DNA of 64,000 nt, taken from Blastocystis sp. Blastoise. Taxonomy: Eukaryota > Protista > Bigyra: Opalinata. Positions 23,044-63,902 of the stretch are shown piece after piece. The notes beneath the pieces are model-generated. The model did not search any database. It was not told the origin of the DNA and saw only the letters and a list, made by a program, of their open reading frames with translations. The stretch lies in assembly GCA_039096225.1 (NCBI GenBank), contig JBBPEB010000013.1, positions 620,001-684,000 on the forward strand. Reading direction: 5' to 3'. Made by a program: the position numbers and the translations under genes. The number at the start of each line of letters is the position of its first letter. Position 1 is the stretch's first letter.

Positions 23044-25556
23044 ATGTTCGTTAAAAATCGCCTTCCTTGTTTTCAGGTGAATGCAAATAATATAAAAGTA
23101 AATTTTGAATATCACTTAATACCATAGAATCTAGGTCATTCACAAGCCAGATGGTTTTTACAATACACTTCTCGTAAATACTGTTTTGTTATAAATTATC
23201 AAATGATATATATACAATAGAAAGAAACACAAACAGCTAAAACTCGAATATATTGTTCTTCTTTATATCTTGGAAATGAAACTCAAGAAAAGAGTTTTGT
23301 TTCTACATTAAAAGAAGCTTTATATAATACTCCTTCTATTAAAATGAACTGGATTCTTGATGGAGTATATAATTAAATTATACAATTTATTGTTATAATT
23401 ATTTTATTTATTTATTTATTAGCTTGTTTTATATATAATAATTGTTATTCTTATGTTTCTATTTATTTTCCCTATTATCTATATTATTATAATGATATAG
23501 TGTCGAGGCACTAGGGGTCATGGCGACTCGTCACTCGATCTTCTTCTTCCCTTACAACAAACATTTCCAAATCAGTATTATATATATATATATATATATA
23601 TATATATATATTACTCGATGTTATACTGTTTATTTTTATTTTATATTCTAATTATTATTATATATAAACTTTATATATAGATTTACGATGAAATATTTTT
23701 ATTTTCCTTTTTATTTCTCGAAAACTTGTTCATTTCTAAAAAAGATCCTTCCTCAGAAAGTACTTGAAATATTCAGTATATATATAATGTTATTAAAGAT
23801 ACATAATATTAATAATAATCATTCATGATAATATAAACCTATTATTATTTATTAATATATGCCTTCTAGATGTCTATCACATAAAGATATATATATTTGA
23901 TAATAAAGTCATTCTTTCAGGAGCAAATCTCTCAAAAACCTATTTCACAGATAGAATCGATCGATATATAATGATTGAATCACAACAATTAGTTGAATAT
24001 TATATAAAAGTATTAAACTGTATTTCTAATGCCTCATCTTCAGTGGATTCCCATGGAAAAGTCACATTGAATAAGCCTTCAACAACATTTATTTCTTTAT
24101 TCAAACAAGCATGTCTTTTAAATAGTTCAAATAACCACGGGAATATGAATAGTACAGAAGCAACAGTAGACGTTACGTCTATAAATAATTGTATAATATA
24201 TTCTAATAGCGATAGTTTACGCTCTATATATATATATATATATATATATATATATATATATAATTTCTTCTTACAAACTGTCTTCTCTAGCATCCACTCA
24301 GGTTCCCGCCACAGAAATACCGCCTTTTGTGTACTTATATCCTACCTTTCAGTTACACCCAAAACCGTACAACATTGATACTGACAAGCACGTGCTTCTC
24401 TCTTTACTGTCCCTCACTAATACATATAATAATAAACAAACATTCATCTCTTCAGGTATCTATTAAATAAAATAACTTTTATCAACTATATTTAGGTTAT
24501 TTGAATATTCCTAAATATTTAACAAATTGTTTTACTCCGAAAACACAATCTGAAACACAAGTATCCTTTATTACATCCTCTCCTCAAGCCAATTCTTTCT
24601 TTCAAGATCCCTCTTATCCCTCTCATATTCCCCTACTTTATTCACATGTATATCCTATTATATATATATATATATATATATATATATATATATATATATA
24701 TATATATATACTATAGGAAGAAGAAGTATTATTCAAACGATTAACAAAACAAAAGATTAATTTTAAAATGTATATTATATATATTATTTATATAATGTAT
24801 ATAATGTATTTTTTTTTTATATAATGTACATAGTGTATATTATATATATATATATATATATATATATAGGTATGAATATAATCATGCTACTTGGTCATTC
24901 CATGCGAAGGGGCTCTGGATTCAAGATATTTTAGGTATATACATATATCATTATTATTACTATATATATTATTATATTTTGTTTATAGTTATTGTTGTTT
25001 TTTTTTTAATTGTATATTATATAATACTAATCAATAAAAATCCATTCATATACATATATATTTCTCTATAAATATTACATATTCCTTTCTATACAATAAA
25101 TATATAAAGATAAATCAAAAGAAATGATAGCTACAATAGGTATATCCATATATATATATATATATATATATATTATATTTAGGAAGTCCTAATTTTGGAC
25201 AACGAAGTATGACTTCAGATTTCGAAACACAATTATATATGATCTCTGAAAACCGTGATTATATCCTTTTTCATTTATTCAATATTTTATTACTATAATT
25301 AATATTCAAATATATATCCTTAACAATGTACTTATATCAATGATGAATAATGAGATTGATGATATTTTCTTTTCAAAAGATGTATTCTTTATTATATATA
25401 TATATATAATATATATTATTTATTCTATTTATATTATAGAATCAAACCTTACAATCCAATACGTTTCAAGATCCCTCACGAATCCCTCCTGCGTCAACAA
25501 TTCATCATCCATTAGCAATTCGATTCTTAGCATATCTTGGGAAATATACTTTATAA
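23044..25556 (+). CDS. PGS1: Phosphatidylglycerophosphate synthase (PLD superfamily), multi-exon
   Basis: SSLYLG, ILDGCRGTRG, HIKIYIFDNKVILSGANLSKTYFTDRIDRY, SGYLN, WSFHAKGLW, IGSPNFGQRS..DFE. Confidence 0.9.
25255..25319 (+). other. Non-canonical GT...CC intron in PGS1
   Basis: GAA AAC C|GTGATT...TATATATCC|TT AAC AAT; read-through hits TAA; no AG in the intron; upstream exon also ends in CC. The donor is atypical, so confidence is lower. Confidence 0.65.
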
Positions 25557-26514
25557 ACAAACAAAATAAATTTATAATCTATGTATTGTTATGTTGTTTT
25601 AACATTTATATACTAAAGATAACAATTCTTCTTCTAAATAAACAAAACACAATAAATATCAATTCAATGTATTTAATGATAAGAATACATCAAGTACTTT
25701 TGTAATAAGACATGAAATAGATATATATTTCTTTTGAGTTTTACACTTTCAATCTTTTGTATTCTTACAATATTAAAAATAATAATTCTTCTTAAATATA
25801 TAAAGAATCTATTTAGTATCAGAGGACCCGAAGAAGCAACACATAGAAGTTATGACTTAAATATTTATATCTATACATTTCTTCTCAAGAATGTAGATAT
25901 CTTTATAGAACTGTCCATACCAAATAAAACAGTAATCTATGTATATATAAGTATATAACTATCTTTTCAATCTTCAGGTGTCCCTCATCATTTACTACTA
26001 TAGTAATATATAGAGATACATAAAAATATAAATAAATATATAGATAGAAACCCTACAATTCACACAATAAGCCATCCAAATAAATAAAAGATTTAAAAAT
26101 ATAAATATATATATATATAAAATCTAATAATTATAAGTAAGACAATAGAAAATGAAAAAAAGAAAATTGAATATATAAAAGAAAATGCAAAATATAAAAA
26201 GAAACACAAAGAGCAGTAAGTATTCACTTATGTTCTTAAATAGAGACATTTTATTCATACATATTCCTTCATATTCAACATATCTATAATCAATTATTGT
26301 GAAAGTCACATATAACGTATTATATATATATATGAATGAATAGTTTGTAAGCTAACCATTAATATATTATATACATATTAAACACAACCTTCGTATATAA
26401 TGATAATAATAAGTATTTCATGTAATATATTGACTTCACAGAAAGAATATATTGTTAAATATAAATATATTTCTTCTGTTTAATGTAAGGCGAACAATAT
26501 TATATATATATAAG

Positions 26515-26935
26515 GAATGAGGTGTAAGCATTCCAGGAATAAAATAACTAATGATGAATAATATATATATGTAGTTTATAAAGAATGATATAAGCCTTTC
26601 ATATCCTGTCTATCATAACTTTAAAACATATATATATAAACGATACATTTCACAAATATATTCAATCAATAGTTATATTGTTTCTTATTCACAACATATA
26701 TATATAATCATAAAGAATGAGGTGTAAGCATTCTTTAGTATATATACTTATAGATAATAATAGAGAATGAGGTGTAAGCATTCTTTAGTATATATACTCA
26801 TTGATATAATATAGATAAATATATAGAATGAGGTGTAAGCATTCTTATATGTATATTATCCCTAACTATATTCCTAACCTGTCCACTTAGGAATCCAAAT
26901 ACGAAACAAACCATAAGAATGAGGTGTAAGCATTC
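26515..26935 (+). repeat. Five dispersed copies of hairpin GAATG-AGGTGTAAG-CATTC
   Basis: Identical 19-mers at 26515, 26715, 26765, 26826 and 26917; flanks extend each stem differently. Confidence 0.9.
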
Positions 26936-62843: not shown

Positions 62844-63085
62844 ATTTTGTAAACAAAGTTGGATAAGAATTTGCAAAGAAAAAAATATTGTTTTGTTCAT
62901 TTTATAAAAGTTTATTCTTATAATAATTAAAGTATATATATATATAACTAGAAAAGAAAATTGTTTAGAATGTTGTGTTTTAGGTGTAGTAAAACATATA
63001 ATAGAAAAAATTAAAAATTTTTGAAATAAACAAAAAAACATCAATAAAATCTTCTTCTCCAAAAATGGAATAAATGTAGGATAAC

Positions 63086-63902
63086 TTAAGAATGGGGTTT
63101 TTCCTTCTTACCACGGAAAAGAGCAAGAAGAGAAGTCTTAGAGACACAGACAACCTTGAAACGAACTCCGGGAATATCACCGACGGCGTGACCAGAACGA
63201 CCGAAACCGGCAATAAGGACTTCATCGTTTAGTATAGATGAATTAATGATTGTTGAATATAAGTAATTAATTATATAATACGTTGTCATCAATATATATA
63301 TGTAAATAATATTTATGTATAGAAAAAGGATCACAATACGAATCAATAAAATAGGTAATATTAATAGTATATAGAAATAAAATAGTGGCTAAAATGAATG
63401 CATACGTTTTCATCGACAAAGTTTAAGCAACCATCACGAGGAACGAAAGCAGTGATCTTCTTTCCGTTCTTAATAAGTTGACAACGAATACACTTACGAA
63501 TAGCGGAGTTAGGTTGTTTGGATTCGACACCAATACATGAATAATAAAATAAATAAATATTGAATAAAATAAAAATAAATTATATATTAAAAGGATAAAA
63601 ATAAGTAAATAATGAAAAAAATAAAATAAATAGTAGATACATACATCTTTTCGGTGACAATACCCTTAGCCATAGTAGCACCACCTAAAACGTTAGCCTT
63701 AATGGAGGCAGCAGAGTGGGTTTTGTTGTAATGCTTATCAGCCCATCTTTCAGTTCTACGGTGAATATGTAATTTACGAGCAGCTCTAATACCGCTTGGT
63801 TTTCCATATAAATTAGATGGTTATTTTCATGTCTAGTCGTTGATGTTCGTATAGTCAGATGAATGACTAACAATAAATATAGAATACATACCCCTTACCC
63901 AT
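63086..63902 (-). CDS. RPS23: 40S ribosomal protein S23 (uS12); exons 63902-63892, 63803-63645, 63532-63406, 63226-63086
   Basis: [71 protein letters not shown]; 145 aa. All three introns end in non-AG dinucleotides. Confidence 0.96.

Follow-up and report, generated by a model that had tools for sequence, protein, structure and literature searches.

How can introns be spliced that lack the terminal AG and end instead in a copy of the last bases of their upstream exon? The question is raised by a window of 64,000 nucleotides (G000:C16:620001-684000) in the assembly of Blastocystis sp. Blastoise, that is Rus-B, an isolate from a tortoise with a genome of 33.3 Mb and 23.1% GC (PMC12129017 Table 1; PMC10690189 Table 2), the assembly used here comprising 33.34 Mb in 34 contigs. 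A sequence-only reading of this window had listed nine introns with such echo acceptors; eight are present in the assembly, while the ninth, in PGS1, is a misread U12-type AT-AC intron. The junctions given for RPS23 introns 1-3, RPS4 introns 1 and 3, NDUFA2 intron 2 and aspA copy 2 agree with the letters of the window, and RPL7 intron 1 does carry an echo acceptor, its end lying at 31629 rather than 31623. The window loci on which the argument draws are as follows.

RPS23 intron 1, 63804..63891, minus strand: GT..GG, echo of 2 nt, one change from TAG
RPS23 intron 2, 63533..63644, minus strand: GT..AT, echo of 2 nt
RPS23 intron 3, 63227..63405, minus strand: GT..AC, echo of 4 nt, donor U2-type and not U12
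RPS4 intron 1, 61448..61620, plus strand: GT..TG, echo of 4 nt
RPS4 intron 2, 61978..62236, plus strand: GT-AG after an exon ending in AG, unaltered
RPS4 intron 3, 62476..62662, plus strand: GT..CG, 4-nt match with one change, junction forced by homologues
RPL7 intron 1, 31509..31629, plus strand: GT..AT, 10-nt echo
NDUFA2 intron 2, 36705..36845, minus strand: GT..CT, two of two acceptor bases replaced
aspA copy 2, 5'UTR intron, 50309..50384, minus strand: GT..AT
aspA copy 1, 5'UTR intron, 43272..43345, plus strand: GT-AG, internal control
PGS1 intron, 25261..25331, plus strand: U12-type AT-AC, not an echo
ribB, 17171..18880, minus strand: six GT-AG introns, control

The PGS1 intron combines a U12 donor of the form RTATCCTT (ATATCCTTT from 25261) with a branch site (TCCTTAAC) and an AC at 25331, the reading frame being kept, and is the sole instance of a U12 donor-plus-branch pair in the window. 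It belongs among the U12-type AT-AC introns of Blastocystis, 346 of which have been described in ST1 (PMC5608401), whereas the other eight introns have U2 donors (GTATGT or GTATAT) and no U12 branch site. Since a U12 snRNA candidate also lies in the genome, at G000:C24:844725-844868 (46.8 bits, E 6e-7, under the gathering score), the minor spliceosome seems to have been kept in the tortoise lineage. Elsewhere in the window, 26438-26960 is a gene-free stretch with a short repeated unit containing CTTACACCT.

Sixty introns, some in the window and some at other genomic loci, were parsed by hand, controls included, and acceptors were tabulated against exon end and expression, as the sequence-only reading had proposed, with expression level taken from gene class. 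Junctions in RPS4, RPL7 and RPL30 apart, splice sites were set by reading frame and by what is known of the proteins, and spliced models were compared with databases one exon at a time. The junction of RPS4 intron 3 is forced, the join of exons 3 and 4 leaving exactly one split codon in 12/12 homologues. The echo of RPL7 intron 1 produces a false ATG within the intron; the corrected protein starts MAIPQS, its paralog MAVPQS. The RPL30 junction is confirmed by the protein of a relative, and a GT-AAG parse of RPL30 intron 1 was rejected, the relative's protein being without the duplicated residues. In GenBank this gene is modelled (WA158_003990) with a start within intron 1 and an incorrect N-terminus (L041 1398-1482, G000:C16 near 1170340-1170424), apparently because of the altered acceptor.

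Acceptors without AG were found in 23 of the 60 introns, 11 on the plus strand and 12 on the minus strand, so that the claim of echoes on both strands holds, and the 37 intact acceptors read TAG without exception (37/37). Wherever the altered acceptors depart from A or G, the base is that of the upstream exon (27/27), a match far beyond chance. As had been claimed for the window, sliding the junctions of altered introns yields no GT-AG, GC-AG or AT-AC in any slide, and junction sliding as the source of the pattern was rejected on this ground. The length of the echo, previously put at 2 nt, in fact ranges from 1 to 10 nt and is ragged, being 1 nt at RPL12 introns 1 and 3 and 9-10 nt at RPL30, RPL7 and the RPS23 gene on contig C14. 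Between one and four bases are changed per altered site, site numbers declining from 11 through 5 and 3 to 2.

The bias towards highly expressed genes noticed in the window is borne out by the survey. When an acceptor is counted as informative if its upstream exon ends other than in AG, 21/26 (81%) are altered in ribosomal-protein and BTF3 genes vs 0/20 in ordinary genes, represented by NHP2, ribB, RPB1, a ubiquitin-conjugating enzyme and NOP2 (p=1e-8, expression by gene class). The ribB introns, already described as GT-AG, are intact in six of six cases although all their upstream exons have non-AG ends. A motif, ATCCAGGGG / CCAGGGG, was observed 100-300 nt upstream of ribosomal-protein genes, at 61350-61356 (plus strand) and 31372-31380 (minus strand) in the window and at loci L009, L011, L028, L041, L001 and L129 elsewhere; it accompanies RPS4, RPS23 and RPL7 (two genes each), RPS5, RPL12, RPL30, RPL7a and BTF3, as well as RPL7 of a distant subtype. 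With 74 matches genome-wide vs 22 for the control, it is a candidate ribosomal-protein promoter element.

One proposal for the window had been AG-independent splicing, the 3' site being set by identity to the 5' exon end. The full 2-nt exon match at 22/24 of the sites scored first speaks for this proposal, as do the acceptors after AG-ending exons, none of which is changed (0/5). However, RPL12 introns 1 and 3 end in AA after exons ending in TA and CA, fitting neither AG nor the exon dinucleotide and thus breaking the rule that an acceptor must be AG or else repeat the final dinucleotide of the exon; five acceptors of ribosomal-protein genes retain AG despite non-AG exon ends; and none of the 20 acceptors scored in ordinary genes is altered. 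Echoes of 9-10 nt and changes at donors are not predicted by such a mechanism, near-identical aspA twins differ in their acceptors, and the second-step factors are present, Slu7, Prp18 and three U5 genes having been found in the Rus-B genome (presence only). Recognition by exon identity is accordingly the least likely of the explanations weighed here.

Donors are affected as well, contrary to the earlier statement that the acceptor is always the end concerned. Genome-wide, four donors carry bases of the next exon, and in 4/4 the changed bases are the first bases of that exon: CT at RPL7a intron 3 and SNU13 intron 2, GC at RPS5 intron 5, which is possibly a natural GC donor, and TG at RPS23 intron 2 on C14, where the parse is ambiguous. 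Compared by end, the changes amount to 3/27 donors vs 21/26 acceptors.

Twins and relatives retain AG where the echo stands. The two aspA copies have about 2 kb in common, and across 43196-44970 (~1.8 kb) the sole substitution between them is the acceptor G -> T in copy 2. Intron 1 of RPS4 is GT-AG in the paralog on C14, and the RPL7 paralog on contig C25 (L048) has a GT-AG intron at the position equal to that of window RPL7 intron 1. Two strains whose assemblies come from the Rus-B study, JDR and NandII, likewise have GT-AG at RPL7 intron 1, and so do ST1 contigs from DNA metagenomes. In another subtype this intron ends in TAG on 4/5 contigs and in TAT on 1/5 (L129 near 718-720); this TAT is not an echo because the exon ends in CC, and as the contig is small the base has probably been misread. 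Some of the comparison contigs represent Blastocystis from gut metagenomes, none being treated as human, and a metagenome scan with RPS4 exon 2 returned distant relatives only, at no more than 77%. Exact look-ups of Rus-B proteins gave no match. RPL12 and RPL30 are each single copy in the genome.

The duplicated loci differ in other respects too. In the 3' flanks of aspA, 124 nt past the stop and directly ahead of an A run, copy 1 has A and copy 2 has T (45002 vs 48647); poly(A)-tail bases could have been introduced there by the same process as the echoes. The C14 RPS4 gene carries an intron (L009 7353-7472, minus strand) that is missing from window RPS4, the 3' halves of the two genes being 97% identical, introns included; the intron may have been gained or lost recently, or the gene may have been partly converted. 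Beside the RPS23 and RPS4 paralogs on C14 there is also a 98.5% identical copy (L009 1-1939) of 51278-53216, presumably a mobile element or a segmental duplicate.

Taken together, the expression-class bias, the raggedness, the donor cases and the AG in twins favour the third proposal of the sequence-only reading, which had rightly asked that it be excluded first: with a probability of roughly 0.88, spliced RNA reads were written into the assembly during short-read polishing. The echo acceptors, real in the assembly, are thus most likely absent from the organism, whose own introns would run GT..TAG. The published record names Flye on Nanopore R9 reads, followed by racon x4, Polypolish x3 and POLCA x1, and Rus-B was alone among the study strains in having its Illumina libraries, DNA as well as RNA, sequenced on a MiSeq v3 (PMC12129017). 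As to the polishing method, which the sequence-only reading had advised checking, the Methods name Illumina DNA as the polishing reads, a point against the artefact; the Results give polishing and annotation as the purposes of the short-read sequencing of DNA and RNA (PMC12129017). The Rus-B reads listed as deposited are RNA only, and a search for DNA runs of the strain returned none.

According to the proposed mechanism, spliced mRNA reads were among the short reads with which the Nanopore assembly was polished. Where a read crosses an exon junction by a few bases, its overhang would be placed on the end of the intron, because it is too short to be split; in highly expressed genes such reads would outvote DNA and unspliced reads, the polisher would turn the intron base into that of the neighbouring exon, and successive rounds would lengthen the echo step by step. 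All changed bases are those of the spliced neighbour, at acceptors (27/27) as at donors (4/4), and their extent is short, ragged and stepwise (1-10 nt, 1-4 changes, within three rounds), as polishing with RNA reads would lead one to expect. With its defaults, BWA-MEM keeps one mismatch at a read end. Under a rule of one end mismatch, every altered acceptor is derivable from TAG in at most three rounds, and RPL12, with its echo of 1 nt, is in the state that this model expects after the first step of the overwriting.

RNA reads may also have entered by another door, through a leak into the DNA set (a shared MiSeq run or a file mix-up) or an undescribed RNA-guided correction, with the same end result, or a few junctions may have been mis-parsed. 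The use of MiSeq v3 for Rus-B libraries alone and the clean RPL7 of JDR and NandII are compatible with such a route, and PGS1 proves that mis-parsing is possible; mis-parsing, however, cannot account for RPS4, RPS23, RPL7 or RPL30, and these routes together are judged highly unlikely. That the cause is technical in one way or another is more probable still than RNA-read polishing as such.

The preference for acceptors is the main loose end of the polishing account, and its reason can be given only tentatively. A toy model with an unspliced aligner over-predicts donor changes (50-74% vs 3/27 observed) and, where the exon ends in AG, changes at position -3 (40-65% predicted, 0/5 observed), and the plain form of this model was rejected as a complete account; a spliced aligner, splitting overhangs of at least three bases at canonical junctions, might account for the lack of change at position -3. 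Polypolish trims alignment ends, but sites with several changes occur on both strands, and the trimming was therefore rejected as an explanation of the bias. Hexamer-primed cDNA ends misprime at A/U in ~20% of cases and least at C (PMC3875578). In a cDNA fragment the hexamer-primed end is the one on the donor side, and 3/4 changed donors go to C (post hoc p=0.014), so mispriming may explain part of the bias.

Reverse transcription in vivo would give the same bias. After a break, the template strand might be lengthened along its own mRNA, first over exon 2 and then over exon 1, the last intron bases being replaced and the result tolerated by the spliceosome; overwriting templated by mRNA was the second proposal of the sequence-only reading. 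The polarity of reverse transcription fits the preference for acceptors and for expressed genes, and RNA-templated break repair exists, its known scar being the deletion of a whole intron and not 1-4 point changes (PMC12065846). Donors are altered too, the echo is absent at the RPL7 intron of other Blastocystis, and AG would have been lost from 81% of informative ribosomal-protein acceptors, including both RPS23 copies and single-copy RPL12, requiring AG-free splicing in single-copy essential genes beside 37/37 intact TAG. This route is very unlikely, and it is likewise very unlikely that the bases are genomic at all, highly expressed genes of this Blastocystis lineage having had their 3' splice sites overwritten by mRNA-templated repair and the U2 spliceosome working without AG.

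If polishing with RNA reads or some other artefact is responsible, splice sites in the most highly expressed genes of the public Rus-B assembly are corrupt; gene models are already damaged, as in the RPL30 start within an intron, and surveys of non-canonical introns would be misled, while the exon-echo test would be an inexpensive way to detect that RNA reads were used in polishing. If the bases were genomic, U2 splicing independent of AG would be seen at scale for the first time, and information flow from RNA to DNA would have a new kind of scar.

Mis-mapping of short overhangs of RNA-seq reads at splice junctions is a known source of false variants. Read-end errors have likewise been described (PMC5322827). 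As in such mis-mapping, the bases next to Rus-B junctions take the identity of the neighbouring exon, scale with expression and are few; in contrast to it, the false bases sit in a deposited genome, and acceptors are affected far more than donors. RNA-templated double-strand break repair also leaves mRNA sequence in the DNA of transcribed genes, its rare product being precise whole-intron deletion (PMC12065846), whereas Rus-B has substitutions over 1-10 nt at most acceptors and its introns are retained, one RPS4 intron being present in C14 only. Many introns with non-AG ends in one genome are also found in Fritillaria borealis, where they are non-canonical U2 introns of the AG-AC and AG-AT kinds; there, GT-AG introns occupy conserved positions and the non-canonical ones are new and transposon-like (PMC11282704). 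In Rus-B, the one intron examined in this respect, RPL7 intron 1, is old and conserved, being shared with ST1 and another subtype, where it is GT-AG, and thus is no new species-specific insertion; and, unlike those of Fritillaria, the altered introns combine normal donors and pyrimidine tracts with ends that copy the exon.
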